Below are positions 3,680-60,873 of a stretch of 64,000 nucleotides of DNA, piece by piece. The stretch is from Heteronotia binoei (lineage: Eukaryota), in the NCBI RefSeq assembly GCF_032191835.1, contig NC_083223.1, positions 163,370,001 to 163,434,000 of the forward strand, written 5' to 3'. The translations under genes were made by a program, and so were the position numbers. The stretch's first letter is position 1, and each line of letters starts with the position of its first letter. Below the pieces are notes generated by a model. It saw only the letters and a program-made list of their open reading frames with translations, did not search any database and was not told the origin of the DNA.

Positions 3680-6600
3680 TCCCTGAGGGCCACACCAAGT
3701 GACCTCCGTTCCTTTAATCAACCTGGATCCTGCAGGCAACCCCCTGTCCCCTTGTCCCCCATCAGCTGACTTAATTGATCTGACTATGGAAGTCTCTCTA
3801 ACTGGCTCAAGGGCACCCCAACATAATGGCTGTATTTTCATTGATGACGCCAGGGTCCTAGAAAGGATCTCCATTATCGATTGACTACCAGCTAGGGAAG
3901 CCACAAGGAATATCTACATTGTCTCCTGGAACATAGCTGGGTGGAAGAGTAAAGTGAATGACTCAGATTTTTTGGACTTTTTGAAATGCTTTGATTGTGT
4001 CTTCCTTCAGAAAACATGGGCGGAAGACAGTTTTAGACTGATGGATTTTAAAGTTTTTAATCTCCCTGCTTATAGAACTCATTCTAAAGGTTGCAGTAAA
4101 GCAGGCCTGGCTGCTTTGGTGAAATCCAACTTACCGTTTAAGGTGGTCCTCTTGGATCCTTGCCCGCCATTTGCCCAGGCTTTATTGCTGTCCTCTCCAG
4201 CACTGACTCTAATCATGATTAATGTTTATTTAGCCCCTTCTAATGGAGAGCTGGAGTTTGATGCTGTCTGGGAGAAATTTTCTGATTATGTGATGTCTTT
4301 GTCTAGGAAATTCCATACTGCTCAGCTCATGTTTTTTGGTGATTTTAATGCTCAGATAGGCAGTAATAATCAGAAATGGATCTCTCATTTTGGCTTTGAA
4401 GTGGCTGAATCCCTGCCACTACAATTATGTTTGCTCCATTGTTCTAAAGATACTTTAACCAATAAGGCGGGTCTTAAGTTAATTGAATTCTGCATAGCAC
4501 ACAACACTATAATATTTAATGGTCTCTCCAAATTTCCGGCTGCAACTGATTTTACTTTTTTTTCCACACGGGGTTGCAGTGTGATAGATTTTTGTTTGGG
4601 TTCACCCAACCTTCCGTCACCTATCGATAATTTTTACATTGATTCACGCATGGAAAGTGACCACTTGCCCCTAATTCTATCTTTAAGATTAGATCTGCAG
4701 GTTAATATGGTATCATCTTCCCAATCTGTGAAGGCCTCTGAGATTGTTCTAAAAAAAAATCAAGTGGTCCCCGGCCCTAGAAAGGGAGTTTTCTTCCCTC
4801 TTTGGCTCTGAAGCACTGTGCAGATTAAGGGATTCAATCATAAATTCCAATTCAGATGATACAGTCCTTTCAGGATTCTCATTATTAATTGATTACTGTA
4901 GTGCTAAAGCTAAACCTGTGATCTTGTCTAGGTCTAGTTTCTCCAGCTGGTTCGATACAGATTGTTTAGCTTGGAAACAAGAACTGAGAGCACAATTTAA
5001 AGAGGCCTGTCACTCCAAAGACCCAACAAAAATTAAGGCCTATATTGCTTGTAAGACAGCCTACCTGGAGCTTATTACATCCAAAAAGAAAGTTTTCTTT
5101 CAGAATAAATGGGACCAACTTTACCACTCGATAAAATCTAATGATAATAAGGCTTTCTGGAGAATGATTTCTGGTAATCTAAAAAACAATTCTGTTATTG
5201 ACCCAAATATTTCAGTGCACACATGGGTTGATTACTTCTCTAACATTTTTGCTGCTCCATGTATATCCCCTCCTATCTTAGCAAACCCCACAGTTACTGA
5301 TATGCCGGTCTGGCCTCTAGTGACTCTAGAGAAAATCAATGATTTATTGAAGGATTTAAAAGTGGGTAAAGCACCAGGCCCTGATGGCCTTCCCACTGAG
5401 GTATTCACAAAGTTTGCCAACTGGTGGCTCTTGCCCCTTGCAAAATTGTTCTCTTTCATTGATCTGCATGGCTCCATCCCAGACTCTTGGCTTGATTCTA
5501 TAATTATCCCAATTTACAAAGGGGGGGGGGGGGGGGTTGGCATTACCAGAAAATTTCTGCCCCATTAGTTTATTATCTCTAGTGGGCAAATTGTATGCCA
5601 AACATTTAGAACTCCGATGAACTGACTGGATGCGCCTAGGTAACATCACAGGTCCTGAACAAATTGGCTTTTCCAAAGGCAAATCTGCAATGGACCATTG
5701 CTGCTCTTTGGCCTTCCTTGAAAAATATATGCATACCGGGACAAAAAAATTATATGCTGCCTTCATCGACTTGAAGGGCGCATTTGATTCAATAGATAGA
5801 GCCCAACTATGGATTAAGCTAGGTTACCTGGCAATTAAGGTATTCAAAGCTAAAACGCTAGCCCAAATTCTCTATGGTATCCCTATATGGATCTCAGCAT
5901 TTACCAGGAAAGTGGAGGGCATTCAAGCCTCATTCTTTAGACAAATTCTTGGTATGCCAAAATGTGTGTCCTACTTTGCTCTCTGCTCTGAAGTGGGTCG
6001 GTCTTTGGTGGAGACAAAAGCCTGGATTGCAGTGTTTAAATTCTGGCTCAAAATTCACTTTAGAACAGATCCTAACAGCCTTCTTGATTGTATGAAAAGA
6101 GACCCATATATTTCATCCTGGACAGCAGTGCTTATGTCCAAATTTAACCAGTTGGGGATAGAGGTTGATTATTTTTTTACTTCTGATGAGTCATATATCT
6201 TCAGATGAATTAAATTGAGACTGTGGGAGTTGGAGGAAACGAAACTGCGGCCAACAGACCCTTATATTTGCTCCCCAGCTTCCTTAGGTCTTTATGCTTT
6301 CTGCGGCAAAATGCCCTATTATCTATCAGACTTAACCATTCCATGTCATCGCAGGGCATTTATGTTGGCTAGACTAAATGTGTTTCCCTCCAAAGTTTTA
6401 CAAGGGAGATATCAAGTCCCTTTAGGTGACAGACTCTGTTCCTGTGGAGTGAATATTCCCGACTCAATTCAGCATATATTGCTTGATTGTTCCTTTTATC
6501 ATAATCTCCGTAAAGATTTATTTTGAAAGCTTTCTTTCTCCCCAGATTTGTCTATTCTGCCACACTGTTATTATTTATTGAATGATACTGAGGGGGAGGT

Positions 6601-30566: not shown

Positions 30567-33500
30567 TTGCAGTGCAATCCTGAACTGCACCTGAGCTGCA
30601 GCAGTTGGCCGCCATGCAACTTTGCCGATAGTCAGCCCCTTACTGGCCAAGTTACATTGTGGCAGAGGAGAGGAAAGTGTAGCTGGCTGCTTGCAAGGCT
30701 GTGTCCATGGTGATTCTGCTGCAGCATGGCCTTGCAGCATACTGTCAAGGTGGGGGTGGCATAAGGGGAGGCGCATAACATCTTTATGCGCCCCCTTGCC
30801 CAGATTGCACGGAGGTATGGGCTGGGTTGCCATCAATATGCAGATGACACTCAGCTCTATCTATTGATGGGCGACCGGGCTGGTGATGTCCCAGCAAATT
30901 TGGACCGGGCACTACAAGCCGTGGCTGACTGGCTCAGGCTGAGCGGGCTGAAGTTGAATCCGGCGAAGACTGAGGTCCTTTGCGTGGGCCGCGGCGGACC
31001 GGGAGGGGAGACTACTTTACCGGCCTTTGACGGTGCGCCACTGGTACCGGTGCGCAGAGTCAAGAGCCTGGGAGTGCTACTGGAGTCCTCGCTATCAATG
31101 GAGGCCCAGGTAGCTGCCACTGCTAGATCCGCCTTCTTCCATCTTAAGAGGGCGAGGCAGTTGGCTCCCTTCCTGGAGCGCGTCGACCTAGCAACTGTGA
31201 TCCACGCAACGGTCACTTCGAGGTTAGACTACTGCAATGCCCTCTACATGGGGCTGCCCTTGTACCGAACACGGAGACTCCAGGTAGTCCAGAACGCGGC
31301 GGCCAGGCTGTTGGAGGGACTACCACGGTGGGAGCCTGCACAGCCTGGGCTGCGCAATCTGCACTGGCTGCCGGTTGTCTACCGTGTTCGCTATAAGGTG
31401 CTGGTTATTACCTTTAAAGCCCTATATGGCCGAGGACCTGCCTACCTAAAGGACCGCCTCTCCCCATATGTACCCCGGAGAGCACTGAGATCTGGTTCCC
31501 AGAATTTATTAACAATCCCTGGGCCAAAAGAAGTTAGGTTGAAGGCCACTAGGGAGCAGGCCTTCTCGGTGATAGCCCCTCGTTGGTGGAATGACCTTCC
31601 AGAGATGGTGCGAGCCCTGCGGGACCTGAACCAATTCCGCAGGGCTTGCAAAACATTTCTTTTTCAATTGGCATTTGAGACATCTTGTGGTATTTGAGAC
31701 AGAACCTGATTAACGAACGAACAGATACTTAGCCATCTTATATACATCAGGACTATATCATTTTAGCACCTATTTTATATGTTTTATGTATTTTAAATAA
31801 CTTATTTGTAATTAATGCTTAAATTGCTATGTTTTATGTGAATCATGGGACTCCCATGTCTGTTATACTGTTTAATGTGAATCATGGGATTCCCATGTCT
31901 GTTAGCCGCCCTGAGCCCGCCTAGCGGGGAGGGCGGGATATAAAAATAAAATATTATTATTATTATTATTTCAGATCAACAGGCGTGACTGGTCCTGGGG
32001 CAATTAGCATTGCATGTGACGGCTGGGGGTGGGGAAGGGCAGCTTAGGAAAGCCCCATTCTCCTCTTCCACTCCACCCTCTTACAGAGACTCATGCCAAC
32101 AGGCACACTGACACCATTATTTGTTTTCCCTGCATGCCAGCATGTTCCATGGGCCAGTCTCCCCCACCCCATACTTCACGTCCATCCACTGCAGTGGCTC
32201 CTGCTACACTGACACAGGGAACCCCCGTGACCCAGTGCCCCTACCAGTGGTACTTGCACATATGCTGTCCTCCTTGAGTGCCAGAGGAATCCCTTTCTAG
32301 AGCAGACACACAGTAAGAAGACTCATCATTCCTCTCTTCTCCGTTCCACGTTCACAACAACCACACCATGAGATTGGTCAGGCTGTGGATCTGGCCCAAA
32401 GCCACCCACCTAGCTTCCATGTTACAAGTGAGGAACTGTCTCTGGGACTCACAGATCCAGCCTCATGCTCTACCTGGCGTAAGCTGGCTTATTCACCCAG
32501 ACCAGCCTCTGCCCCCCTCCCTTCATACAGAAGCCTGTGAGGTGAGCAAGTCCTCCCTCTTAGACATTCCCTCAGTAAACCCACAGAGGGAGTGGCAGAT
32601 GGGGCAGGGAGGGAGTGGGGCAGGGAGGAGTATAGAGCTCTTGCCATGTAGCAAACACCAAGCAGCAGAGACTTTATTGCACGGGGATCCATCCATTTCC
32701 ACTCTGGGGACTGAGGATACCTGGAATGGCATGCACCTAAGTGGGATGGTTTGCTGGACATGAAGCTCTGCTTCAAGAGGAGGGCTGACTGAGAAGAGTG
32801 CATGTGAGGGAAAGACTTGCCATAGGCACAAGCCTCTCTGTTGAATCTCCACCTGCAAGACAGTAAAACAGGGCCATGGCAACTGGATGCCATGCCAGCT
32901 TCAGCCATGGATGTCTTGTTCTGATAGGGTCTGCAAAGACAGACCCATGAAGGGGGGATCACATGATGATCCCCCCTTGAAGCACATGATGGAACCAGTC
33001 AAATCACACTCACCTGTCCTGTGTTGAAGTGTTCCCAGATTGCTTGCAATCCATCTGCCATAGCACTTGCAGCTCAAAGCTGTGATTTGGCAAGGGAATG
33101 ACTTAAAGTAACACTTGCCAAAATGGTTCACCACAAGCAGTGGAGCAGCTGCCAGACTCTACCCACCCACAGACACACTCTTCCCTGCCGAGGGTGGGAA
33201 CAGGCAAATGATGGACCATCTCACAGAAAATTTTCCATGGAAGTTTTCACATCGCATGTCAGGGGCCATGGTGTCACTTGTGCAGCCCCATGCTTGTGCT
33301 CAATGCTAGGCTTCAGTGCAGGAGATGCTGTCACAGTGCCCAGACTCAAGTGAGGGGAGAGGGAGAGCAGGTTTGGGGTGCTTGCCCATACTTACCAGTC
33401 AGTGCACAGATGCCCCTGTGGGTTGAGCCTCCGAAGGTTGAATAACTGTTAGGATTCAGAAATGGGAGAGGTCAGCCAGAGAGTATAGACTTCACTCTCT

Positions 33501-34700
33501 TCCTTGGGTGTCAGCACAAAGTGCTCTCCCTGTAATGCTAAGTGCCCCCTCTCTGCATCTCCCACCACCAAAGTGCCTTACCTCTCACTCTAAGTTCGCA
33601 CAACAGGGAGTTCTGAGACAGAGTCCCTTGCCACACACCCTACCTACTGAGTTGTACATTATCCTGATGGAAGTTTATGTAGGGTTAGGGGAGCCAAGAC
33701 TGGGTGTTGAGGAGGGGGCTTGGCTGCTCCAGGAACTAGGGGACTGGCCAAGGCTGTAGTCAGCATCCTGAGCTCCTCTGTGAGCAACTAGATGCCTCAA
33801 TGGGCCTGTGCTGATGCAAGTGCTAGTTACACCGATACAACTGAGATGTATGCCAACATAGGGATAAGTTTGCTCCCAGAGCACTTTCAGGCTCCCTCCC
33901 CTCAGGATTGCTCTGTCTGGTATAGATGACATCTGTAAAAATCAACAAAACCTCCCAGCATAGGCAGAGAAATGTATAGGTCATGGCATCACTATCAGTA
34001 CATATTACTGGGTAAATCACAGGAACGTGTTTGTAGGTTGTATTCCGAGCCTCACATTTGAAACAGCATCTAGTTCTAATCTCTGTTGGACTAACCAGTT
34101 TTAAATTTCCTGTATTTGGGCTGTTATATTGGTGGCCTTCCAATTCTCTGGTAAGGGAATTGATTTTATTTACAAGTTATGTGTCTGAGGCCCTTAAAAG
34201 ACAGGCCTTTCTCTTTTGAAGGTTTTATTAAAAACCTTAACATAGCGCAAGAGATAAAAAACTGTCTGCAGAAAAGATAGAGATCTGTCTACTCTGTTTC
34301 TTTTCTTTTTTTTTATGAACAGCTTTGACCAAATTTGCATTGTCTTTCTCAGTGTTGTTTGCTCTTTCACATGCAGCAGCATCAGCCAGTTTTAATTTCT
34401 TAGGGGCCCCCTCCTACTCCTCTCCTGATATTTAATCAAAGGTACTCCTTGGCGACATTTATGGCTGTAATGCACGCTCTCCCAAGCAAGCAAAATCCAT
34501 AAGGAATAATAAAGGTTAGTAAGCAGGTGCTGATCCTTCAAGGTGGAAGCATACAGGATGAGTAGGTCCAGGGTTGCCACAAAGGAAAACACAACAGATT
34601 TATGCCAACCCAGTAATACCTTTTGCACTCTAGTCACATAATGTGGGCATTATCACAAGGCTGTCTGGTGAAAGGAGCAGAAATGGGTGGAGTTTGGGCT
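30567..34700. mobile_element. Unclassified GC-rich repeat-like segment (possibly Harbinger-type), split by the L2 at 30777-31971
   Basis: Starts gcagtgcaatcc, is richer in GC than the flanks, and carries several minus-strand splice-site pairs. No matching right TIR or transposase motif was found. Confidence 0.3.
30777..31971 (+). mobile_element. Relatively young 5'-truncated L2 LINE
   Basis: Uninterrupted 303-aa ORF 30786-31697 with HQYADDTQLY, SRLDYCN and LHWLPV. The 3' UTR ends gggcgggatataaaaataaaat(att)n. Confidence 0.93.
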
Positions 34701-35369: not shown

Positions 35370-38300
35370 TGTCAGGTTGGGCTGAGCACATATCTGCCCA
35401 CAGGACAGAAGTCTTGGGTGTGTGCTCGATGCAAGGAGCTCCTGGTCCTCAGGGAACGAGTTCGTACCCTTGAGGCTGAGGTGACTGACCTGGAGAAGCA
35501 GAGACAGTTAGGCACTCAGAGAAGACTCTTGGGAATGTGTTAGATGAGCCCCGCTCTGAACGTGGCAGCCCCGTTACTGCCAGGGAGCATGAGGGTCGAG
35601 AGGGAACACAGCACCGGGCTGAGGATAAGGGGAATGTGCCCTTGGAAGGGACCTCTTCCTCAGTTGGTGAGCGGGAATCCTTTCGCGCCAAGGAACCATC
35701 CCTGCGCAGGGAGAGAGAGGGGGTCTTAGTAGTTGGTGATTCGATCCTTAGGCAAGTAGACAGCTGGGTGGCAAAACCACGTACTGACTGTATGGTGACT
35801 TGCCTGCCTGGTGCGAAGGTAGCGGACATTACGCGTGTAGTAGATAGACTGATAGACAGTTCTGGGGAGGCGCCAGTGGTCGTGGTGCATGTTGGCACCA
35901 ATGATGTGGGGAAATGCAGTCGCGAGGTCCTGGAGGAAAAATTTAGGCTGCTAGGTGGGAGACTTAAGGCCAGGACCTCCAAGGTAGCCTTCCCAGAAGT
36001 GCAACCTGTTCCACGTGCAGGGCAGGAGAGACAGGCACAAATTAGAAGTCTCAATGTGTGGATGAGACGATGGTGTAAGGAGGAAGGGTTTGTTAGGCAC
36101 TGGGATGCTTTCTGGAACAAGCGGGAGCTGTACAAAAGGGACAGTCTCCACTTGTCCCCAGATGGAACCAGGCTGCTGGAGCTTAAAATCAAAAAGGTGG
36201 CAGAAGAGTTCTTAAACTAAATCTTGGGGAAAAGCCGACAGGAGATGAAATGTCTCTGGTTTGGGAGGACTCATCTCAAAGAGATGAAGGGTTAGCTGTT
36301 ACTTTTCTACCGGGTAATGGATCAGAGTTGTCCACTGAGATGGTGACAAACAAAATGGACTGCCTGCCAGAGTCTCAAGGCGGCAGGAAGAAGGTGGCGT
36401 GCCTAGCTTGCCTGGGAAATTATAGATGTTTGTACACAAATGCTAGAAGTGTTGGAAGGAAAATTGGTGAGTTGGAATGTTTAGTGTTGTGAGAAAACAT
36501 AGACATTGTGGGAATTTCAGAAACTTGGTAGAATGAGGAGAATCAGTGGGACACGGTGATTCCTGGATATAAGTTATATCGGAAGGATAGGGGGAAGGGT
36601 TGGAGGTGGGGTGGCTCTGTATGTCAGAGAGGGCATACAGTCCAGTAAGACTGAGGTCAAAGAATTAGATTCCCTTATAGAAATGCTTTGGGTTGAAATA
36701 GAGGGCCCAAAAGGAAATTTAACTATGGGAGTTTGTTATCGCCCACCAAATCAAAAGTTAGAGGACGACTATAATATGATGGAAGGCTTAAAGATAGTGG
36801 CTAGATGTAAAAACTGTGTCGTCATAAGTGATTTTAACTACCCGCAGATTGATTGGGTCAATATGTGTTCTGGTCGAGAGAAAGAGATTGAGTTTCTAGA
36901 TGCTCTCAATGACTGTGCTATGGAGCAGATGGTCTCTGAACCTACCAGGGGTGGGGCGATTCTGGATTTGGTCTTAAGTAATGCCCAAGACTCCTTTAAG
37001 CGGTGGAAAGCTAGTCCAAGTGAGATTAATAAAAGGGAACACAGGCTGTGGCAAATCAAATGCAAGACTGTGATCAGGCAGGCAAAAAGGGACTATGAGG
37101 AGCATATTGCAAAAAACATAAAGACCAACTATAAAAATGCAAGACTGTGATCAGGCAGGCAAAAAGGGACTATGAGGAGCATATTGCAAAAAACATATTA
37201 GAAGCAGAAAACCAGCCAGGGAGGCAGTGGGGCCCTTGGATGACAAAGGGGTCAAAGGATTACTGAAGGAGGATAGGGAAATGGCTGAGAAGCTGAACGC
37301 ATTTTTTGCCTCCGTCTTCACTGTAGAAGATGAGAAGTGTTTGCCTGCTCCAGAACCACTTATATTGGAAGGGGTGTTGAAAGACCTGAATCAGATTGAG
37401 GTGACAAGAGAGGAGGTCCTACAACTGATAGACGAATTAAAAACTAATAAATCACCAGGTCCAGATGGCATACCTCCAAGAGTTCTGAAAGAACCCAAAG
37501 TTGAACTTGTGAATCTTCTGACAAAAATATGTAATCTTTCATTGAAATCTGCCTCCGTTCCTGAGGACTGGAAGGTAGCAAATGTCACCCCCATCTTTAA
37601 AAAGGGTTCCAGAGGAGATCCGGGAAACTACAGGCCAGTCAGTCTGACTTCAATACTGGGAAAGTTGGTAGAAACCATTATCAAGGACAGAATGAGTAGG
37701 CACATTGCTGAACACAAGTTATTGAGGAAGACTTAGCATGGGTTCTGTAAGGGAAGATCTTGCCTCACTAACCTGTTACATTTCTTTGAGGGGGTGAACC
37801 AACATGTGGACAAAGGAGACCTGACAGATATTGTTTACCTTGACTTCCAGAAAGCTTTTGATAAAGTTCCTCATCAAAGGCTCCTTAGTAAGCTCGAGAG
37901 TCATGGAGTAAAAGGACAGGTCCTCTTGTGAGAGCCAGTTTGGTGTAGTGGTTAAGTGTGTGGACTCTTATCTGGGAGAACTGGGTTTGATTCCCCACTC
38001 CTCCACTTGCACCTGCTGGAATGGCCTTGGGTTAGCCATAGCCCTGGCAGAGGTTGTCCATGAAAGGGCAGCTGCTGTAAGAGCTCTCTTAGCCCCACCC
38101 ACCTCACAGGGTGTCTGTTGTGGGGGAGGAAGGTAAAGGAGATTGTGAGCCGCTCTGAGACTCTTCGGAGTGGAGGGCGGGATATAAATCCAATATCCAA
38201 TATCTTCTTGTGGATCAAAAACTGGCTAATTAATAGGAAGCAGAGAGTGAGTATAAATGGGCAGTCTTCGCAGTGGAGGACGGTAAGCAGTGGAGTGCCG

Positions 38301-39317
38301 CAGGGCTCAGTACTGGGTCCCATACTCTTTAACTTGTTCATAAATGATTTGGAGTTCAGCGTAAGCAGTGAAGTGGCCAAGTTTGCAGATGACACTAAAT
38401 TGTTCAGGGTGGTGAGAACCAGAGAGGATGGTGAGGAACTCCAAAGGGATCTGTTGAGGCTTGGTGAGTGGGCGTCAACGTAGCAGATGAGGTTCAATGT
38501 GGCCAAGTGCAAAGTAATGCACATTGGGGCCAAGAATCCCAGCTACAAATACAAGTTGATGGGGTGTGAACTGGCAGAGACTGACCAAGAGAGAGATCTT
38601 GGGGTCGTGGTAGATAACTCACTGAAAATGTCAAGACAGTGTGCGATTGCAATAAAAAAGGCCAATGCCATGCTGGGAATTATTAGGAAGGGAATTGAAA
38701 ACAAATCAGCCAGTATCATAATGCCCCTGTATAAACCGATGGTGCGGTCTCATTTGGAATACTGTGTGCAATTCCGGTCACCGCACCTCAAAAAGGATAT
38801 TATAACATTGGAAAAAGTGCAGAAAAGGGCAACTAGAATGATTAAAGGTTTGGAACACTTTCCCTATGAAGAAAGGTTAAAACGCTTGGGGCTCTTTAGC
38901 TTGGAGAAACGTCGACTGCGGGGTGACATGATAGAGGTTTACAAGATTATGCATGGGATGGAGAAGGTAGAGAAAGAAGTACTTTTCTCCCTTTCTCACA
39001 ATACATGAACTCGTGGGCGTTCAATGAAATTGCTGAGCAGTCGGGTTAGAATGGATAAAAGGAGGCACTTCTTCACCCAAAGGGTGATTAATATGAGGAA
39101 TTCACTGCCACAGGAGGTGGTAGCAGCTACATGCGTAGCCAGCTTCAAGAGGGGGTTAGATAAAAATATGGAGGTCCATCAGTGGCTATTAGCCGCCGTG
39201 TGTATATATGTGTGTGTGTTTGTGTGTGTGTATAAATTTTTTGGCCACTGTGTGACACAGAGAGTTTGGACTGGATGGGCCACTGGCCTGATCCAACATG
39301 GGTTCTCTTATGTTCTC
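35370..39317 (+). mobile_element. Long CR1 LINE (esterase ORF1, APE-RT ORF2), degenerate
   Basis: ORF1 has SGNH motifs VVGDSIL and HVGTND. ORF2 has YTNARS, DFNYP, SPGPDG, NYRPVSLT, QGSVLGP and KFADD. Contains stops, an internal deletion and a 63-bp duplication. Tail ends ttctcttatgttct. Confidence 0.93.
37930..38205 (+). mobile_element. tRNA-derived SINE (MIR/Squam-like) inserted in the CR1 RT region
   Basis: gagagccagtttggtgtagtggttaag head, L2-like tail, TSD tcttgt (37924-37929 and 38206-38211). Confidence 0.9.
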
Positions 39318-40282
39318 CCCAAGGGAGGAGCTCAGCCAATGGAGAAAACAGAGGTTTTGCTCTGTAGCTCCTGTGCAATTGAGCAAGCCTTGCAAAGCAA
39401 GCTGTTATGCAGAAGGAAGCAAGATATAGGGAGAACGAAGCAGATGACAGCCAGTTGCTCGGGGGCCTGATAGGAGCCCTCCAGGGGCCTGATTCGGCCT
39501 CCAAACTGCATGTTTGACACCCCTGATAGACAATTCTGGCACATCAGCAACAGGAAGTCCCAGCCAGGGAACACAGATTTCATATTTACTCAGCACGTAC
39601 AAAGAGAAGGGTGTTTCCCACCTCCACCTCCATTGCCATACAGATCACACAAAAAACCACATATCCCTCTGTGGTGCTGCCATCTTTTCCCCAGCAGGGC
39701 TGCTGTTTCTCTCCAAAGTGTAAGACAGGCAGTTACACAACAGGTATAGCTGTACTCAGCATGGAGATAAAGTAAAGGGGGGACCTGCGCATGTTGTTTT
39801 CCTGATGGTCACATATCTGTTCCATGTAGGCTAGTTACTCCTGTTCTTCCTGTTGCTTTCAAAACTTAATAGTATCACATGTACTTCTAATAAAAGTTTT
39901 CCTGTTCTTACTTTTAGCATGGTCTGTGTGGACTTTTAGTCCTATAGGAGGTCTGGAATACTTTTCCTATGAATTCCAGGTAAATCTATGAGTTCCAGGT
40001 ACAGGCTTTTCCCCAACATCTGAGCTATGTAGTTTTTGACAGAATGATCCCCGCCCCCAGCCAGCCACTGCAATCCAAAATATCTTCTGAAAGGCGACTC
40101 CTTGGGTCAAGGGATATTTGGGGCTGCAGCAGGAGGTGGAGAAGGTGAGGAAATTATGTTCCAAGAGCAGAAGTCTTCCCCATCCAGGGAAATGCTCTAT
40201 TGACTGCAATCTACGGTCTGGATAGGCTACTGCAGAAACTGCAACTCCTAGTGTGAAATAGGAGAGGACCATGGCTCAATGG

Positions 40283-41491: not shown

Positions 41492-42199
41492 AGTATCCCT
41501 AATCCAAAGGGTGGCTGCTGAAAACTCTGGTGTAGGGATAAATAATTCACAGCTCTTTCCCTCCCACATTTAGGATTAGGAAGCAAAGCTTCCAAAACAG
41601 ATGTCAATGCTTAAAGGCCAGCACCTCGCTTTTGAGAGATTAAGTACCACTGCCCACTCAGTCACCTTTTTAAAGGGGCACAGAGGACGAGCTCAAATCA
41701 TCATGATTCATTAATCTTCGTGGAAAAATAGAGAGTAAAATGACCCTGGAAACAAAGTAATAACTCCTTTGCATTAAACTGTGCATGCCCTAGTTGGTAT
41801 CTAATCACGTAGAAATCCATCACCCCTCTTGCCTGGCCCTGGCTTTTAGGCACTTTAGTGGCATTTTGCAGCTCAGACACTTTTGACCCCGACTGCTTCT
41901 GACACACATGCTTTTTGAAAAACGAAAATAGGAAGTTGAATCACAAAAGCCGGGCAAAGGGATTGAGGGCCAACAGCTTCCAAGTGCCCCACTGAGCATG
42001 CTCGGCCAGACTGAGCCGCCTCCTCATTGCAAGGTAAGAGTCTATAGAATTTTACAAAAGCAGAAAACATGTGTCTTCCCCTTCCACCTTCAGCAGTGGC
42101 AAGTTATTTTCTCTGCCTTTTCCCTCTGTTTAAATTCCTCGTTTTAATAAGCCGCCTCCCAAACAACAGCACAAACTCAAAAGAGCTATGTTAACCGTG

Positions 42200-42960
42200 C
42201 TTACAGGGTGCTCGCCTCCCTTCAATCACTAGCTCCACCTCTCAGGGCTTTATGTAGGCCTACCCTCGCTCCAGCATCAGGGGCTGAGCCCCAAAAGGCG
42301 AGAGTCATGCTGCTGTTCCTCCCTCGGTATGGGGTCCACGTTATATTACAAGCACTCACGCTAGACTTCTCTTTTCTGTTCCGATTTCCAACTTTTCTGC
42401 CAGTCCCTGAAAGGGCTGACTTCAATTCTACTAATGCGCAAGCGTAACTGGAACCCATTTCCACCACTAGAGAGGAAAATACTCTCCAAGTCCAGGGAAA
42501 ACGCTGAATTGCTTCTCTGATTGGTTCTCTCCCTCCTTTCTACAGCCGCTCTGTTCTCAGACTCAAAAGGAGCCGCAATACCCTTCTGTTAGGAAGAGGC
42601 AGTAGAGCTGTCTCCATCCCAAGAAGCCGCTTATCCGTTTGCACACAAAGCGAGCACCATCTACGCCGCCCCCCAATGTGCCCTTTCAATGGATTTTTCT
42701 CACCCAGACAAAAACATCCTGATCTTTCCGCAGCTTTTCTGTCCAGTTCCCATCTCTTAATAGGGAATTGAAGAGGCTCGTCGGTTTCTTTGTTTTCTAT
42801 TGCTCCTGCTAGATACTTTTTAAGGGCCTGGCGATGTATTCTCTCCGAAACTGGTGGCGCGGCTCTGTCTCCTGTTTTTTTCTTAACCACTTCCTTCCAT
42901 CGTGTTGGACTTCCTCAAGTCAGACATGCCTCCGTGAGCAAAAGGGGAGGGGGAAGCCGG
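42200..42960. promoter_or_regulatory. CpG-enriched candidate bidirectional promoter
   Basis: CpG density is well above the flanks. CCAAT box ctgattggtt near 42520 and tgcgca near 42435. Plus donor ctcc|gtgagc at 42934 and minus donor ctagc|gtgagt at 42359. Confidence 0.5.
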
Positions 42961-43185
42961 TCTATTACAAGAACCTTCAGGACAATTTGATATTCTGCAC
43001 ACAAACGGTTGTAGCCATGTGTACAGTTCCACTGTGAAGAGTGCAGGACATTGTCACTATATTCCCAAGTGCAATGTTTTTTGTTTCCTCTCAGAAATGC
43101 ATGGCAGCCATAAGCATATTAGCGAGGGAGCTCATTTAGGAGTATAGTTGCATCTTGTCAAGAGTAACATCTGCTATTTCAGCTA

Positions 43186-43466
43186 CAGAGCCAGCTGATG
43201 TAGTGGTTAAGTGTTTGGACTCTTATCTGGGAGAGCTGGGTTTGATTCCTCACTCCTCCACTTGCACCTGCTTGAATGGCCTTGGGTCAGTCATAGCTCT
43301 CTCAGGAGTTGTCATTGAAAGGGCAGCTGCTGTAAAAAGCTCTCTCAGCCCCACCTATCTCACAGGGTGTCTGTTGTGGGGGGGGGGTGGCAAAGGTAGA
43401 GGAGATTGTGACCGCTTTTAGATTCAGAGTTAAGGGCAGGGTATAACTCCAATATGATCTTCTTCT
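43186..43466 (+). mobile_element. tRNA-derived SINE (same family as 37930-38205)
   Basis: Colinear homology to the 37.9-kb copy. Confidence 0.88.
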
Positions 43467-45534
43467 CACATGGCCTGAGTTCTGTTTTTGGCTACTCTAG
43501 TAAGTGATGGAAGCATGGAATGCTGAGATTTGGCCCGCCACGGAAGAAATTACACATATCTCCATGTTAGGGTTTCCTGTCCAGGTACCTTAAAGGACTG
43601 GATTTCTTTAGCTCAAGCAGTAGAATTACATCAGTTACCTTTGGGGCATTCTGCTTTTATTAATCTAAGGGAAAAGTTGCTCCTCTACACTGCTTTATTT
43701 TCTTTATTACAATTTTCATCCTGTTGAGGATGATTAAATCTGGAGGCTGGAGCTGTGAACAGACAAGACAGATCTTTCTACAAACCCGAAAAATGCCTCA
43801 AGTTTGCGGAAGGAATCTGGAATCTTAAATAAAAATGAGGGTTTTTAAAAAAATCCAAAAGGATAAAAGGATCACCTGTAGCTTTAAGAAACACACAGGC
43901 TAACTTTTGGCCGGTTACGTATTCTTGACCTCACCTAACAGGCAGGGGTGGACTGGCCATTAAGAGTACCAGGACACCCACCTCTCAGTGATAGTTCCTT
44001 CCTGCCTGAGCTTGGCCAGTCCTGTGATAGAAGGGCACCATGAAAGATGGGGAGGTGGCTCCCAGCCTTCATAAGGTGGGGTGGAGTAGACAGGGCCCAT
44101 CCTCTCTGAGCCCCTCATAAGTTAAGTCAAGTCAGGGGAGATGGCACCTGGCCTGTCAGAGCCCTGTGTGAGGCAAGGCAAGGGAGGTGGTACCCAGCCT
44201 GCCCAAGTGCCACGTGAGACAAGGAAGGCAGCAACGGCACCTGCCTTAACTTGTGCAAGGTGGGATGAGGAAGGCAGCTGTGCCTGGGATAGCCTGCATG
44301 AGGCAAAGCAGTCAGCAGCATCCATATCCTGTAAGGCAATGGTCCCCCAGACTTTTTGGCAGATGATGGGGGGAGAGGGAGGGCAGGGCTGGAGCATACT
44401 ATGCAAGCATCGCATGCTATGCAAATGTCATAGTACTCCCCCAACCCTGCTCAGGCGGCTTCAACTTTCCTTTGCAAACAGAGGGGGTGGGGAGGAAAAT
44501 CAGCTCTCATGCGGCCCAGTTGCCCTGCTGTAAGGCAAAGGAGCCGGCAGTGCCTAGCTCAGCCCACAACCTCACTAGCTGAGGAAAGTGGCAGCACTCG
44601 CTTGTCTCACTTTAGAAGGCTGCAGCATCCATCTCAGCATGCACAAGGTGAGGGAAGTGGCTTCTAGCTCAGCCCACCCAAGACGCATGCAAAACCAGGG
44701 AAACATTGCTGCTTTGTCTGCTCTCCCTCCCTCCTTTGGAGGAGTAGAGCTGGGGCTAGGGGTTTTCAGGAGGGCCCTTTTCCAAGGTTTTTCACTCCCA
44801 ATCCTCCCCAGCTCACAGTGTCATTCTGAGGATAAAATGGAGAGAAGAATGCAGTAATGTGTTTTAAGTCTCCATTGTGGAGGAAAGTGGGGCATAAATG
44901 AAGTGAATAAATAAATACAGCTGAGGATAAAAGTTGGTGGTTGGGTGGAAAGGAGAGAAGCAAGTAGGGAACAGTAAAGGTATGAAGGAGGGAAATTGTG
45001 TGGAGGAGGGGATACAGGGGAAGATGAAGTACCCCTTGCATGTTCCCCACTGTATAACTGGGCCTGCAGGATGGAAAATTGAAGAGGGGTGGAAGCTACA
45101 GGTTGACAGGTGGGTGGGAAGGAGAAAGGAAAAAGGAGAGGTGATAGGGGCTTTCAGGGAAAGGAAAAATGAAATAGTGGATGCGGGATAAGATGTCCCC
45201 TGCAAGTCCTTGCTATTTTCTGCTTGTTGATACCTAATCCTTAAAGATTAGGTATCAACAAGATCCATGCAACAAGAAAACCAAACAAACCACTTTTCCT
45301 TGTTGCTTCTTTTACTACTGTCATCAAGCTAAAGGCATTTTCCCTGTTCTTACCGCTTTTTGTCTTTTGAACAGGGCTGCTTGTGATCTGAACAAAGTTC
45401 CTCTTTGGATTTATTATAAAATAATTAAAAGCCCAACTTCATCTTCTCATTCAGACATAAACAGAGGATGGTTCAAGCCTGGCCCCATATTGGTTTTTAT
45501 TTCTCATTTTGATTTCTATTAAAGAGAATCAAAT

Positions 45535-46806
45535 ATGATACCCCATCAAATATTTGGGAAACAAATTTTTACAGGGCTTCTCAGGAAAGATGTTTTATTT
45601 GGCAACGCTTTCATCATCATGCTTGTCTTTTATGGAGTTTATCAGGACAGAACCATGTTGGTTGAGTATACAGACATTGACTATCAAGTATTCACTGATG
45701 CTGCCAAATACATCACAGAGGGGAAATCTCCTTACCTAAGAGCCACATACTGTTATACTCCATTGCTGGCCTGGATCCTAACCCCAAACATCTACATTAC
45801 TCATCTGTATGGAAAGCTCCTCTTTATTGCTGGGGATCTGGTTGCTGCATACCTCATGTACCAGATTCTTCTGCTCAGAGGACAGGACAGCAGGAAGGCC
45901 TGTGGGTGCTGCGCATTCTGGCTCCTCAATCCCCTGCCCATGACTGTGTCCAGCTGAGGAAACGCTTGTAGCCAGCCTAGTCCTAGGCACCATGTGTTAT
46001 ATGGAAAAGAGGCATCTGGCCAAGGCTGCTGTTCTTTATGGCCTGTCTGTACATATGGAAATCTACCCAGTGACCTATGCACTGCCAATAGCTCTCCATT
46101 TGCAAAGCAGCAGAAGCTACAAGAAAGGGAAGACCAACAGGCTAGAGAAACAGAAAACTGGCTGCTCTATGAGCATCATCTGGGGGCTTTTCTTAGTTGT
46201 TCAGTTGGGATGTTCTGCTTTTTGGAGCTGTGGCTGGATGTACCTTTGCTGCCCTGGGCCTTGTTTTTTATTTCTGTTATGGTTGGGACTTTCTGGAGCA
46301 GACCTACCTCTACCACTTGAGCCGGAGAGATATCCACCACAACTTCTCACCCTATTTCTTCATGGTGTACTTGACCGCAGAAAGCAAGTGGAGTTTTTTC
46401 CTTGGCCTTGCAGCTTTCTTGCCTCAAATCCTGCTGCTTTTGGTTCTTTCTTTCGCTTATTACAAAAATCTTGTCCTCTGTTCCTTCCTGTACACAGCTG
46501 TTTTTGTGAGTTTTAACAAAGTATGCACATCTCAGTATTTTCTATGGTACCTTTGCCTCCTGCCACCTGTAATCCCCTTTTTGAGGATGTCCTGGCAGTG
46601 GGCTGCATTCCTTCTCCTGCTCTGGTTTATGGGCCAAGCAGTGTGGCTGGAGCCTGTGTACTTTTTGGAATTTGAGGGGCAGAACAAATTTCTTGCTCAT
46701 ATGGCTAGCAGGCTTACTCTTTCTTTTTATCAACTGTGTGATTCTTGTCCAGATTATTACTCACTATTGCACTGTGCAGATTACCAGGAGAATTAAGCTA
46801 CAGTAA
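45535..46806 (+). pseudogene. PIGM: Disabled GPI mannosyltransferase I (PIGM)
   Basis: Recognisable motifs [53 protein letters not shown] and C-terminal IWLAGL...INC..L.QII.HY. Lesions: TGA at 45955-45957 in place of Arg, an apparent 8-nt deletion near 45966, frameshifts near 46155 and 46195, and +1 near 46690. Confidence 0.93.
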
Positions 46807-48060
46807 CACTTGATTTGCTGCACCAGTTCCACAGGCAACAAGTTTTAAAAATGTGATACAAATACCATTTTGCAATGTTGTTGTTTTGGAGAGGTTTTTT
46901 TTCTTGGTTTATGGATATGAAGAGGTTTGGGGAAGGGCTGATGATGTAAGAATAACATATCCAGATTTTTAAGAAGCATCTTTGTTTGTTTGCTTGATGC
47001 TGATGCTGCCTACTCCAAAGCCCTGTGAGAGAGATCCTCTCTCCTTCCTGGAAAAAGACTTAGGAGGGGCAGGAGGCTCTTGCATTTTGCTGAGCTTTGT
47101 AAGAAGAAGAAGCAGGACAAGAAACTCTTCTGGTTCCTCTGGTAGACTCTGAGAACCTGCTGAAGGGGTGCATTTGGTGGCAGCCTTAGATAATGTCCAG
47201 ATCAGGATTTGGAGATCCACTTCTATTTGCTGTCATGGTTGTTTGTTTAAAACTTGTTAAGAATTTAGTTTTTAGTTATGTAATTTTTGGGTCCAGAAAT
47301 TATATAAGCTTTCTTTCAAGTCTGCTTTCAGTTACATCACCTTCCCCTATTGTCTCTAACACAGGGAGGCAATGAAATGAAACCATAAAAGCTCCATAGT
47401 GGCATTTCCCTAAAGGGACTGTTTAACTCCATAGCAGAGCTAAGGAGAAAGTCACTTTGGGGGATACTAGGGCGGTCCAGAGCGCCATAATCATATCTGC
47501 GTGCTCTCAGACTAGTGTATCCATTTTTATCCCGCCAGTCCTCTGAGGATTTTAGGGCAGCTTGCGTGGTTCTCCTTTTTATCCTCACAGCAATCATGTG
47601 AGGTAGGTGGGGCTGAGAGAGAATATGCAAGCCATCTAGTGAGCTTCATGGCTGATGAAGAGGGATTTGAACCTGAGTCTCCCCAGAACTCTAACCACTA
47701 CACCAGCTCTCAATATGGCATGTATTGACCATCTTGTAAAATAAGTTGATTCGAGGAGGTGGTGTTGGTGCTGAGAATGCTAGCTGGTTTAAGGATGGCA
47801 GGTTCTTGAATAGCAGAAAGGTGTGAACTGAGCAGTGAGTAGCATAAATTAAGAGTTCTGGAAAACTTGAAAGCTTGTACATTGTGTGTTATATTGGTTG
47901 GTCCTAATAGAAGATATTATGTGGCACCATACCAACTTTCTTTTCTAGTAAGAAGGCTGAGTCCAGCAGGACTCCCAAATACTTAACAGTTAGACAACCC
48001 CCCCACCACCACCACCTTTAAGACTGGTAGTATAATCCCTTCTGTTATATTCCACCTTAC

Positions 48061-51860: not shown

Positions 51861-51904
51861 GGATTGTCTGAATTGTATTAACTAGAAAGTCTGATGTGAG
51901 AAAG

Positions 51905-52185
51905 GAGGGCCAGTTTGGTGTAGAGGTTAAGTGCGTGGACTCTTATCTGGGAGAACCAGGTTTGATTCCCCACTCCTCCACTTTCAGCTGCTGGAATGAC
52001 CTTGGGTCAGCCATAGCTATCACAGAGCTGTCCTTGAAAGGGCAGCTTCTGGGAAAGCTTCTCTCAGCCCACCTACCTTACAGGGTGTCTTTTGTGAGGG
52101 AGGAAGATAAAGGAGATTGTGAGCTGCTCTGAGACCCTGAGATTCAGAATGAAGGGTGGTATATAAATCCAATATCTTCTTCTTT
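51905..52185 (+). mobile_element. tRNA-derived SINE (same family as 37930-38205)
   Basis: gggccagtttggtgtagaggttaag...atataaatccaatatcttc. Confidence 0.88.
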
Positions 52186-52271
52186 CTTCAAACTAAAACT
52201 GTAATCCTGTGCATGTGTAGAGAGTAGGTGCTCACTGTAGATTACTTCCAAGTAACCACGTAGAGCAAGCC

Positions 52272-54613: not shown

Positions 54614-55306
54614 ATGATACTTCTTTACTCCACCACTAATTCACTGGCATTTTTAACATATGGAATAGTCTGATGGTGAGTCACTGATCCATCAAGTACA
54701 AAATTCTCCACCATGACTGGCAGCAACTCTCCAAAGTCTTAAGCAGAGAAAGTTCTTTTCTAATACCTGCTACCTGACTTTTTTGTGTGTGTGTTTTTTA
54801 AAGGAGATACTAGGGACTGAAACTGCAGGCATTTCTGCAAATAAAGCCTATGCTCCGCCAACCAAATTATCCTCCCCCTCCTCAACTTTTTCTCCTAGTT
54901 TTCATCAAAAGATCAATGGAAGAAAATGTGAATGACGAACATCAGGAATCTGAGAAATAAATAAGGCCAAGTGAATAATCTTATTCATTGATAGATGCTT
55001 TAGATCAAAGTAATTGTGCCCTAGTGCTAAACAAATTCTAATTAGAAAACTCTTCATGATTCATAGACTTTTTAAAAGATTGAGAGCATTTCCTGTGCAC
55101 ATTTTGTGAGTTCAGCTGGTTTTCAAACATGCATTTTTCAATTTATTGCTTTGTTGCTGCAGCCTAGGATCTGCAATATATCCATATTAGGTATACCGTT
55201 CTCCAGTAGCTAACAGAATTGATTTATTTCCAGTTGATGGTTAGATGTAATACACTGGTGCTAGTGAAATCTCATTCAGTGGTGAATCAAGTCTACAGTT
55301 ACTTAC

Positions 55307-55619: not shown

Positions 55620-56369
55620 CTGCAGTGAAGGAGGGGAAGTGGACAAAACATAAAAACCAGGTAAAAACTAACAACTGGAGCATCAAAAATGTATAAAATT
55701 GTAAGTCCCAGTCTAACACCTGCTTTATCAGACTCCAGATCTAGTGCCAAAAAGCTCTGAAAAAGTTAAGACAGGACAATAACATTCAGTAGATGTCAGA
55801 GGCAATATTCATTTTAAAAGAGACACAGTCCTGCATAATAAACTACTGAAATGAACCGTGGAAGAAGCACCATGGTGTTGTTGGGCAGTTCCCTGTCATT
55901 TTCATAGAGCATGTGCAGGAGAAGGTTCTGCCAGAGCATTTCCAAGAATACACATGTGGTGGGGGGGGAGCTGATGGAGACATTATGTCAGTGCCTGGTT
56001 TTTAATGAAAGTATCATTCTACATGCACAGATGTAATAGGGGCTTTTTTTTACGTATCAGAGTCTCAGTGTGGAACTTCAGTACCTGCTAACACTCCATT
56101 GTACCAATTAAATACAGTAATGTTGGATGATAATAAAATGATAATTATCTACTTAATTCTAATCTCACCGGAGATTTGAAACACAAGTGCAACACTTTGT
56201 GTTGAATCTTAGGGGACCATCATAATAGCCTTTGATGTTCTGCAAGATAAGCAACCACAGGAAATGATGGATCATTTTTTAAATTCTGCATTATCAGTGA
56301 ACTTTTATAAGTTCACCCTTCAAACTCCTTTTTCTGTTTATCATTGCTTGTTTTAACATTTAATTTATC

Positions 56370-56850: not shown

Positions 56851-57739
56851 CATGTCAGCAGGGGCACATAGAGCAGGGACTCTTGAGAATTGTTGTGACA
56901 GAATTTATAATTTCAAGATATTTCCTTATATTAGTCTAATGTGCTAATTTAACAATCTCCCTTAAGGTCACATGTTCAGGTAGCCAATTCAACTAGTTGA
57001 GAGTGCTTGCATAAACCTGTTGATGTTGCTCCTTAAATTAAAACTGTTTGAACTATTCCTCATTCTTCTGGTCTTTATTCTGGAACCTAGAAACATTACA
57101 TTATATAGTGAGTTCAGCCAACTTGAGGTAAGCAAGAACGTTTATTGTACAAGAGCAGAACTGAATACAAACAGGCAACACCACTCCTTTGGCCTGAGTT
57201 AAACATGCCCCCTTATGTGGGCAGCAATCCACCCTATTGGTTTCTCCAGGATCTTTCATGTGCATTTCCTGAGAAAATGCCTTGTGTTCTGATTGACTGG
57301 TTTTAAAAGAACAGCCAATCAAAATGTAAGCATCAGGGTCTGGAGGGCAATGAAGTATGCTTCAAGGTCAACTAACAGACATAACAAACCAGTAGTCAAA
57401 ACAACCAATACACAACTAAGAACAACGGCAGGTTAATGGGCCGGTTAATGTGTTCAGTGGGCAGGTTAATGAGTTCAGTGACATTATTTCCAAGCAAGTG
57501 GATTTATAATACAAGAGCTCATTGCTAAGACCTCCTAGATAGGTGATCTAGCTATCTAAATATTTCACAAAAGTTATGGCTTCTCCTAAACTGTTCCTGT
57601 ACACTGCACCTGAGACCCAATATTTACCTCACAAGATTCAGTGATGAAGCAAATAATATGTGATGGAAACAGCTAATGACACTGGAAGTTATATGACTAA
57701 AACTGACACCCCTTCCTGGATCAGAAAATATCCATTCAA

Positions 57740-57965
57740 GCCCTGACCTGGATAGCCCAGGCAAGCCCAATCTCATCAGATCTTGGAAGCTAAGCAGGGC
57801 TGACTCTGGCAAGTACTTGAATGAGAGAACTCTAAAGAATACCAGGAGTCAGGACGCAGGGGCAGGCTGTATAAAGCCACTTCTCTGAACATCCTCCATG
57901 CCCCAGTAGGGCTTACTAGAAGTTGCCATGACTTCGAGGCTTGCACACACAGAAGAAGAAGAAGA
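57740..57965 (+). mobile_element. 5S rRNA-derived SINE (SINE3-type), apparently full length
   Basis: 5S-like region gcccaatctcatcagatcttggaagctaagcaggg...agtacttgaatgagagaactctaaagaatacc, then a non-5S body and a cacacaca(gaa)n tail. Confidence 0.82.
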
Positions 57966-58559
57966 CCACGACGATCTAATCCCAATTCAGACTTCCTGAT
58001 CTTGGACTGAGTGCACATATCTCTCATCTAACTTGTTAAGCTTTCCTTTGCATTGATAGGGCAAGTACAATAGCTCCAGAAGTTATAGATTTGAAACATT
58101 TTTGCAGTTCAGAAATTTATTGATTAGTTTAAAAATTATTATAGAAAAAGAGGATTTTTTCCCATTATGGGAATATTGCAGTTTCACCCAAACATGATCC
58201 AAACAATTCTGTCTTAAATGTTGCTTTACATTATAAAATGACAATTTTGTGACACAATTTGTAAATATTAATAGAATATTTAGCTTGCTTACAAACTAGA
58301 GATTAACATTTGTTTTTATTATAGAATATCCAAATAACCAGTATTTGCTAAATAAAAGTTTAATGACAGATCATTTTTATGTCACAAATTAGTATGTTTA
58401 ACTTAAAATATTTAATGGATTTCAAAAATCAGTTGTCACAGCATTACTAATATGTTGTTTCCAGTCACTCTGTAAGCTTAAAATAGATTTTTATCAGCAT
58501 TTTTGACACATTTTGAGAAATATTTTCATGACTAATGATGTGATGTCTGAAGGTGGATG

Positions 58560-58835
58560 TAGAAGATATTGAAGAAGATATTGGATTTATATCCTGCCCT
58601 ATACTTTGAATCTCAGAGCAGTCACAATCTCCTCTACCTCCCCCCACCCCCACAACAGACACCCTGTGAGGTAGGTGGGTCTGAGAGAGCTTTTTACAGC
58701 AGGTGCCCTTTCAAGGACAACTCCTGTGAAAGCAATGGTTGACCCAAGGCTATTCCAGCAGGTGCAAGTGGAGGAGTGGGGAATCAAACCTGGTTCTCCC
58801 AGATTAGAGTCTGCACACTTAATCACTACACCAGA
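58560..58835 (-). mobile_element. tRNA-derived SINE (same family as 37930-38205)
   Basis: Reverse-complement homology to the 37.9, 43.2 and 51.9-kb copies. Confidence 0.88.
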
Positions 58836-60873
58836 GAAGGACCACAGAAGACAAACTTGTATGAACAAGCAGATTTATAAAAGAGCAGGCAGATACTTGG
58901 GTCCCAAATGACACAGGACTTGATGAGCCAAAAACAGCATATTGAATCCCATCCTGTAATACACTGAAATGAAGTTTAACAAAAACTTATAATACCAGTA
59001 AATGCATTCAGATTGGCAAACCACAGCTGTCTGGTTGGCTGCTGTATGTCAAACCGGATAAAGTTTCTCAGTTTTCAAAAGTAGTCCCACATATAATGTA
59101 AGTGCAATAATGGTGCTGAATGGATAGCTGTATATCTCTGTCCAAGAGGGATTGGTGCTCATGCATCAGTTTAAGCTGGTAAAAGGCACACTGTGTCAAA
59201 TGGACATTGTTGAATATAAAATATTGTATCTCCAAGTGGGTAATATGATGCCCAGCAGAAAGTGCAACTCCATCCAGAACAAGCTGGACACTGCAGTTTG
59301 ATCAGTTGATGTATCCATTGAGCTTTGGTTGATTAACTCTCACTATATATTGATAAAATTTCACCCTAGAACTCCAGACAACCTCCCCCAGTGGTCTAAG
59401 TTCTAAGTTCCAGGTCCAAAAGCTTCTGTGGTATCAGCTACACAGACCACAGAAAATGACCTCTGTTAACAAGTCCACACAAGTTCTTTGGAGATATGTG
59501 GGACTACTAGGTGCCTGGGCTTATGGCCAGACAATGCTTACAAAGAGCCACAAACTAGTTCCTTTGTGATCAGACTTTCCATGCCATTACCCTTATTTGT
59601 GTTAATTGCAGCAACCCCTTTTGAGCCAAGCCACCACAGCAAATCACTGCATCCACACTAAGTATAGGCCTCCCATGAAGACACTGACTTACCCAAATAG
59701 TGACTCCATATTAATAGTGCCCAGGCCTATAGAAATCCTTCATAGTCCTCAGATGGTCATGTAGGGGCCACTGGTGAGAGTGGACTGAGCCTATAATGTA
59801 ATGACTATCTTATCCTTTTGGCAATGGATAAGATAAGCACTATCCATCTTAGGCACTATCCCTAAGCAGTTGACTAGAGGAAATTCTTTAGTGATGAGAG
59901 AGAACTCTGAGGTTCTAACTGAAACATACCTATAGTGTAAGAAAAGGGTATGTGGTAGCTATATTTTAAAAAAATGTAAATGTATTCTGATATAAACATT
60001 TCATACTAGGAGAAATTCATATGAGGCAACAGCCACTTACTTTGGAGCAGATGGTAAGGACTGAAAAATTATGAGCTGCATGTTCATAATTCATTCAGTG
60101 ATGAGCAATGGTGCTTTCTAATATAAAACTGGGGGGGGGGGATATGTAAAGTGTGTAATATATAAGAGCACCTTAGCTAAATGGGCCTGATACAAAAGAG
60201 AAATGAACACATATGGTTCGTGATTTATGTCCAAGATTTGTATCCTACCTTTCTACCATGAATCTTGATTAAGAAAGGGGGGGGGAGCACCATAGGTAAA
60301 CTGATTATTGTCTTTGGCATCAATACTAAATAGGTCTTACTCCCAGGAATGAATTGCAGCCTTTGTTTCTCAATTTTACCTGTCCTATCCTGTAGTTTAG
60401 TACTTATTCTCCATCTGAAAAGCAGAGTGCATTTAAGTATTTGGCATCTTTTCTCACTTTCCTAATTTCTAGACTGAAATTGTTTGCCATTTTCCTGAGT
60501 ACAATGTGACAATGTGTATGAGTAGCAGGCACTTCCTGCCATATTCAAAACTGTGAAATGTATTTGAAAATAGATTTTAATTAACATTAGCACTTGCATA
60601 ATTAGTGCTGGCAACAAGTTACTTGCTAACCTCAGCAGCATGGGAAACTGCAACTATTTTAATTGGCTCTGAAGCAGGGAAATAACGAGGTCCACACACA
60701 TTGCTGGTATGAAACGAATTTTACTTCTGGCACCATAAGCAGAACTTAGTCGGCCATAAGCCTCTAAAATGACTAAGTTAAAATTATTTCCCATACAGCG
60801 AGTTTTTATTCGCATCCAAAACAAGCAGGCCGGCCCCCCAGGCTTATCTGACTCAACATTCTCCACCCTCCTG

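Follow-up and report, generated by a model that had tools for sequence, protein, structure and literature searches.

A probable ancestral-position PIGM pseudogene in the gecko Heteronotia binoei and an intact copy beside INTS5

The gene PIGM, which specifies the catalytic subunit of glycosylphosphatidylinositol (GPI) mannosyltransferase I, is present as a real pseudogene in a stretch of 64,000 nucleotides from the gecko Heteronotia binoei (NCBI RefSeq assembly GCF_032191835.1, contig NC_083223.1, positions 163,370,001 to 163,434,000 of the forward strand), here called the window. Taken together, the evidence very probably places this non-processed pseudogene at the ancestral PIGM position and makes a DNA duplicate beside INTS5, elsewhere on the same chromosome, the copy that took over. 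The apparent paradox of a dead essential GPI-anchor gene is removed by this working paralog: the essential GPI function is not lost, and the event is of a known kind, relocation by duplication and loss of the parent. Positions below are those of the window unless chromosome coordinates (C1) or a locus extract (L followed by a number) are named.

Results

The PIGM reading frame in the window is broken

The Pfam family Mannosyl_trans (PF05007) matches positions 45992-46796 in two pieces (E-values 5e-11 and 8e-59), which cover profile positions 21-239 of 259, and a genome-wide family search agrees. The first piece, of 140 amino acids (45535-45957), has no Pfam match of its own and is identified as PIGM because the full length aligns with intact PIGM genes. 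An uninterrupted frame of ~420-430 codons is expected of PIGM; here, one premature TGA and three frameshifts leave open pieces at 45535-45957, 45992-46516 and 46197-46796, the longest of 199 codons, and the final ~40 codons stand in a fourth frame, past the +1 at 46686.

Lesions were scored against orthologs from the same locus, 88-92% identical, namely two Logan contigs (SRR13336339 and SRR13336341) and Sphaerodactylus. This yields one stop, three frameshifts (-8, -2, +1) and one in-frame 6-nt deletion (Table 1). Compared with the Heteronotia paralog (85.7% identity over the coding region), the same CGA to TGA change is found in register, together with several indels; a +1 and a +11 relative to the paralog were rejected as lesions, since together they amount to four codons by which the lineages differ in a variable loop. 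A preliminary description of the window, made from its letters alone, had already reported the arginine-to-TGA nonsense codon and the two-residue in-frame loss, both of which we recover, and was exact about the CpG-type changes at two conserved arginines. Its count of at least four frameshifts including two 8-nt indels was too high, since the orthologs give three frameshifts and a single 8-nt indel.

The damage extends to residues that hardly vary elsewhere. Of 158 alignment columns with conservation of 97% or more across 119 tetrapod PIGMs, ten show replacements in the window copy and an eleventh holds the stop (R75, R143, K180, R269, Y277, L279, D313, F316, H321, A376 and T386). The DID (DxD) motif is retained in the translation; other invariant residues, including R269 of the donor-phosphate motif YH..R.D.RHNFS, are not kept.

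An intact PIGM lies head-to-head with INTS5

The preliminary description had proposed that a duplicate took over and that an intact copy be sought across the assembly. The family search of the 2.63-Gb assembly found just two PIGM loci, the window (C1:163.41 Mb) and C1:258.41 Mb, and the second is an intact single-exon open reading frame of 424 amino acids (C1:258408416-258409690, minus strand). With this frame in the genome, the window copy is not a unitary pseudogene. The encoded protein is 100% identical to the H. binoei record 'GPI mannosyltransferase 1-like', and the gene is head-to-head with single-copy INTS5, 95 Mb from the window copy. Two full-length, inverted U2 small nuclear RNA (snRNA) genes lie ~6-8 kb past its 3' end, so that the segment shared with the window (see below) sits between them and INTS5. 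Paroedura picta and Gekko kuhli each have an intact PIGM in the same INTS5-side context, collinear with C1:258.40-258.42 Mb.

Several side observations concern this neighbourhood. U2 copies also flank PIGM in Gekko and Paroedura. In Gekko kuhli the 5' leader just before the PIGM start is present twice in tandem (L011:8751-8921 and L011:9658-9771), and the public PIGM model gives a 302-amino-acid product though a 424-codon frame is open. The Heteronotia INTS5 record (P0121) carries the public name 'neutral alpha-glucosidase AB isoform X1' and probably reflects a gene model that fuses GANAB and INTS5 by read-through; in that case, the new PIGM sits in a GANAB-INTS5 neighbourhood.

RNA signal is found for the intact copy

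In RNA run X25, 55% of the sampled words of the intact INTS5-side copy were present and none of those of the pseudogene, as the proposed takeover by the only other PIGM would lead one to expect. When the X25 contigs and two raw RNA runs were placed on 41700-47300, essentially no depth was obtained over the pseudogene and no spliced read was seen; each raw run was sampled at ~6% and few tissues were covered. In no run were more than 8% of the words of the window sequence present. One DNA contig, from a different sample of this organism, matches 45076-45343 at 99% and ends short of any lesion; it ties the organism behind the RNA runs to this species. The sole part of 41700-47300 with deep RNA and DNA pile-ups is a short interspersed element (SINE) at 43196-43382. 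A SINE-like repeat of ~280 bp has many copies at both PIGM loci, among them 43187-43466, 37930-38209, 51897-52189 and 58556-58833. From the RNA data, the window copy would appear to be silent in all tissues, and the INTS5-side copy, presumably fully functional, would now supply GPI mannosyltransferase I.

Synteny places the native locus in the window

The intact PIGM locus of Sphaerodactylus townsendi shares eight blocks collinear with the window, from 33959 to 60180, and non-coding anchors are also shared with Hemicordylus, Anolis and the turtle Chrysemys picta (Table 1). The blocks shared with Anolis, Hemicordylus and Chrysemys keep the order and orientation of the window, and the stretch 60480-60640, which holds one of the two Anolis blocks, is single-copy in the genome; copy number was checked for this block only and not for 56197-56332. 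The flanks of the INTS5-side Heteronotia locus were matched by none of Sphaerodactylus, Anolis, Hemicordylus and Chrysemys, this locus being collinear only with Paroedura and Gekko kuhli. Moreover, each of Podarcis, Sceloporus, Anolis sagrei, Elgaria and Hemicordylus has PIGM and INTS5 on contigs of unequal length and hence on separate chromosomes. Within the 10 kb that precede INTS5 in Sphaerodactylus there are a U2 gene and the 5' part of INTS5 but no PIGM sequence, which looks like an empty site; the U2 match there is weaker (68.9 bits) and lies 5 kb upstream of INTS5 (L019:4577-4741, plus strand).

Non-coding synteny with the outgroups and the separate chromosomes of PIGM and INTS5 thus identify the window as the native locus and the INTS5 side as derived, and the collinear flanks in four outgroup species bear out the earlier proposal of a native gene that decayed after a duplicate took over. 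That proposal had also named RGS7 as a neighbour of PIGM in some sauropsids. Exons for the DHEX domain of an R7-family RGS gene do lie ~240 kb before the window (C1:163117654-163131346, minus strand), in keeping with such a neighbour; the gene may be RGS7. In Podarcis, a cyclin-domain gene lies 9 kb upstream of PIGM, but the only exon it provided, 36 residues of low complexity, was too weak a probe.

The duplicate was made at the DNA level

The two Heteronotia PIGM loci are collinear over spaced blocks at 41798-42198, 42615-42726, 43588-43684, 45268-46827 and 46991-47141, and comparisons with Gekko and Paroedura extend the shared segment to ~41580 and ~47295; Paroedura also matches 43526-43638. 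The upstream part is not a repeat, since 41580-42730 has just two places in the genome, the window and the region upstream of the paralog. In all, the segment measures ~5.7 kb, of which ~3.9 kb lie upstream of the ATG, and no poly-A tract marks the 3' homology boundary near 47300. A copy that carries so much upstream DNA results from DNA-level duplication of ~5.7 kb and not from a processed transcript. A retrogene, which had been offered earlier as an alternative to a duplicate, was rejected on these grounds and on the synteny of the window copy with outgroups.

The preliminary description had argued against a retrocopy from signals of a 5' untranslated region (UTR) intron. The polypyrimidine-AG motif ending at 45374 is kept in seven of seven gecko loci, ancestral-type and INTS5-side copies alike, and is compatible with a splice acceptor as far as the alignment can tell; the donor proposed at 42934 aligns with nothing conserved. 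The intron argument is unnecessary, because synteny settles which locus is native. At ~42600-43000 the window has a CpG-rich remnant (observed/expected CpG 0.66), probably what is left of a decayed promoter. A strong CpG-rich kilobase is found in Sphaerodactylus (L010 4800-5800) just beyond the shared upstream block, and the INTS5-side loci have no CpG island within the copied segment, only one at INTS5. A CpG island was set aside as promoter evidence, as the Sphaerodactylus stretch also matches short GC-rich repeats.

Table 1. Features of the PIGM pseudogene, its lesions and its surroundings (window positions unless an extract is named)
Feature	Position	Strand	Basis
PIGM (GPI mannosyltransferase I catalytic subunit) pseudogene, ATG to TAA	45535..46806	+	PF05007 matches; ortholog and paralog alignments
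6-nt in-frame deletion (2-residue loss)	45619	+	comparison with orthologs
R75C, CGT to TGT (YRY to YCY), CpG-type	45751-45753	+	codon reading
R143 stop, CGA to TGA, codon 143, CpG-type	45955-45957	+	comparison with orthologs and paralog
8-nt deletion, frameshift	45963-45965	+	comparison with orthologs
2-nt deletion, frameshift	46196	+	comparison with orthologs
R269H, CGC to CAC (DIRHN to DIHHN), CpG-type	46335-46337	+	codon reading
1-nt insertion, frameshift, within a short A run	46686	+	comparison with orthologs
Upstream block copied with the gene	41580..42880	+	collinear with the upstream region of the intact copy in Heteronotia, Gekko and Paroedura, and with Sphaerodactylus
Short non-coding block between upstream region and coding exon	43588..43684	+	80% identical, collinear with C1:258410997-258410902
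5' leader of coding exon with polypyrimidine-AG motif (candidate splice acceptor) ending 45374	45268..45534	+	seven-locus alignment
3' flank, probable 3' UTR, alignable to duplicate locus	46807..47300	+	homology fades near 47300
Conserved non-coding block upstream of PIGM, synteny anchor	34068..34458	+	common to Hemicordylus (two adjacent blocks) and Sphaerodactylus (L017 2615-3024, L010 687-1175)
Conserved non-coding block downstream of PIGM	54962..55059	+	common to turtle Chrysemys picta; part of a longer block also found in Sphaerodactylus
Conserved non-coding block downstream of PIGM	56197..56332	+	common to Anolis and Sphaerodactylus
AT-rich non-coding element downstream of PIGM, without coding frame	60502..60613	+	Anolis, 81% identity
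U2 snRNA gene, Heteronotia INTS5-side extract	L004 1423-1613	+	194.5 bits
U2 snRNA gene, Heteronotia INTS5-side extract	L004 2786-2976	-	194.5 bits

A probable old duplication and a probable late loss of the ancestral copy

Protein and DNA trees unite the INTS5-side genes of Heteronotia, Gekko and Paroedura (support 100/99) and group the ancestral-type sequences, that is the window copy, the two Logan sequences, Sphaerodactylus and Euleptes (support 84-87). A recent duplication confined to Heteronotia is rejected by the approximately unbiased (AU) test (p = 0.0002), and a duplication after the split from Sphaerodactylus, which fits the empty site, is not rejected (p = 0.13). The duplication therefore probably occurred in the gekkonid stem lineage, although the tree (see Discussion) and the empty site disagree on its date.

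The genomic Logan contigs SRR13336339 and SRR13336341 carry intact PIGM frames at the ancestral locus, and the latter aligns with the window from 44894 to 47208, non-coding flanks included. Measured on INTS5, synonymous divergence (dS) to Heteronotia is 0.39 for the SRR13336341 species, 0.39 for Paroedura and 0.52 for Sphaerodactylus. The SRR13336341 gecko is thus at gekkonid-level divergence, and an intact ancestral-locus PIGM persists at that depth. On terminal branches, the ratio of nonsynonymous to synonymous substitution rates (dN/dS) is 0.29-0.36 for the window copy versus 0.15-0.30 for intact copies. Constraint on the window copy would accordingly have been lost in roughly the last sixth to third of its branch, which fits the five lesions: judged from its substitutions, the gene was apparently selected for most of its history and was lost at a late stage of the Heteronotia lineage. 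Indirect support for the lesions comes from the missense load and from the dN/dS values.

Sphaerodactylus has a second PIGM-like protein (P0020, 401 amino acids) on a long branch, 87% identical to its ancestral-locus protein (P0006), which points to an independent duplication in that lineage; the genomic place of P0020 is not on record. No publication on a duplicated PIGM in squamates was found.

The surviving copy carries R269C

Codon 269 of the intact Heteronotia PIGM reads TGC, a cysteine (C1:258408884-258408886; L001:1921-1923, minus strand). Arginine stands at this position in 118 of 119 tetrapod homologs and in the fungal Gpi14 chains with solved structures, and it is retained in Gekko and Paroedura. 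The pseudogene has histidine at the same codon, by a CpG transition on the opposite strand. With the numbering checked, residue 269 corresponds to R246 of the Candida glabrata enzyme, which shares its motif with H239 and R242. The YH..R.D.RHNFS motif has been given a donor-phosphate role, and H239 and R242 of C. glabrata Gpi14 contact the phosphate of dolichol-phosphate mannose (PMC12653191). A cysteine here in the sole surviving copy raises a cheap, testable question about a residue beside the donor-binding site of GPI mannosyltransferase I.

Other elements of the window

Apart from PIGM, no long open frame (at least 130 amino acids) in the window resembles a host gene. Long open frames at 3954-6208, 30786-31697 and 35537-39470 resemble, by eye only, endonuclease or reverse-transcriptase fragments of long interspersed elements. 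At 57739-57857 (plus strand) there is a 5S rRNA match (42.6 bits against an Rfam gathering score of 38), which also matches repeats near the other PIGM locus and is probably a 5S-derived SINE.

Discussion

We propose the following course of events. Probably in the gekkonid stem lineage, a segment of ~5.7 kb (~41580-47300), comprising upstream DNA, leader, coding exon and 3' flank, would have been copied as DNA between the U2 cluster and INTS5. Both copies would then have stayed under purifying selection for a long time, until the ancestral copy in Heteronotia lost constraint and acquired a stop codon, three frameshifts and CpG transitions that strike invariant arginines. It would no longer be detectably transcribed, and the INTS5-side copy would provide GPI mannosyltransferase I. 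A parallel with mammals, suggested in the preliminary description, is speculation.

Several points weigh against this account. In the maximum-likelihood trees the INTS5-side clade falls outside every ancestral-type sequence, Sphaerodactylus included (84-87); taken literally, this topology means duplication before the Sphaerodactylidae split, which conflicts with the empty site. The lesions are covered by no read or contig and stand on the assembly alone. Each raw RNA run was sampled at ~6%, with reads placed on the window locus only. The surviving copy has R269C at a near-invariant arginine, so its full function is an assumption. Finally, for Paroedura and Gekko the comparison covers the INTS5-side loci only.

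A broader version of the history is unlikely. It holds that two PIGM loci were selected in gekkonids for tens of millions of years and that lineages resolved them differently, Heteronotia losing the ancestral gene, the SRR13336341 gecko keeping it and Sphaerodactylus making a second copy of its own, with R269C hinting at an altered or compensated GPI mannosyltransferase I.

It is very unlikely that the pseudogene represents one allele or a lineage-specific haplotype, such that an intact ancestral-locus allele may segregate. H. binoei comprises a deep complex of species, hybrid parthenogens included. Relative to the length of the branch, constraint was lost recently, and intact orthologs are present in two other geckos, both of which would suit such a haplotype, but five independent disabling lesions with many missense changes imply millions of years of decay rather than a young null allele, and the DNA contig from another sample agrees at 99% with the window, though it stops short of the lesions. 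The preliminary description had also raised a degenerating sex-linked or duplicated haplotype, and no data link the locus to either.

Errors of assembly or sequencing in a gene that is intact in the animal are a highly improbable explanation. The lack of read coverage and the position of the +1 in a short A run would allow it; however, deletions of 6, 8 and 2 nt and a stop codon are not homopolymer slips, as the preliminary description had also judged, the ten replacements of invariant residues and the raised dN/dS independently indicate relaxed constraint, and no RNA signal was seen although the paralog was detected.

Least credible of all is that the INTS5-side PIGM is native and the window copy a secondary retrocopy or dispersed duplicate: an intact gene does stand there and a single coding exon makes intron loss useless as a test, yet non-coding synteny with the window is found in four other species and with the INTS5 side in none of them, Sphaerodactylus INTS5 is without PIGM, the two genes are on different chromosomes in five non-gecko squamates, and homology to the ortholog runs far past the gene (44894-47208), with one shared block being single-copy.

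The preferred reading, an ancestral gene replaced by its DNA duplicate, gives a well-bounded case in which an essential single-copy gene changes its chromosomal address through DNA duplication and loss of the parent. For annotators, it means that 'GPI mannosyltransferase 1-like' is the functional H. binoei gene and that synteny-based orthology would break down in gekkonids.

Among known systems, pseudogenes left by duplicative transposition come closest: there too, two copies arise at the DNA level, the daughter at the new locus keeps the function and the syntenic parent decays by stops, frameshifts and CpG transitions. The gecko case differs in that most vertebrates have only one copy of the gene, which encodes an essential housekeeping enzyme, that both copies were apparently selected for tens of millions of years and that the dead copy is the ancestral one. 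Retrogene replacement likewise brings a gene of one coding exon to a new place and is accompanied by loss of the old copy, but here ~3.9 kb of upstream DNA with spaced collinear blocks came along and there is no poly-A tract. Human PIGM is the catalytic subunit of GPI mannosyltransferase I, and an inherited GPI deficiency results from mutation of an Sp1 site in its promoter. It shares with the gecko gene the PF05007 family, the single coding exon and the dependence on its promoter; the difference is that the dead gecko copy is backed by a paralog, so that no deficiency is expected.

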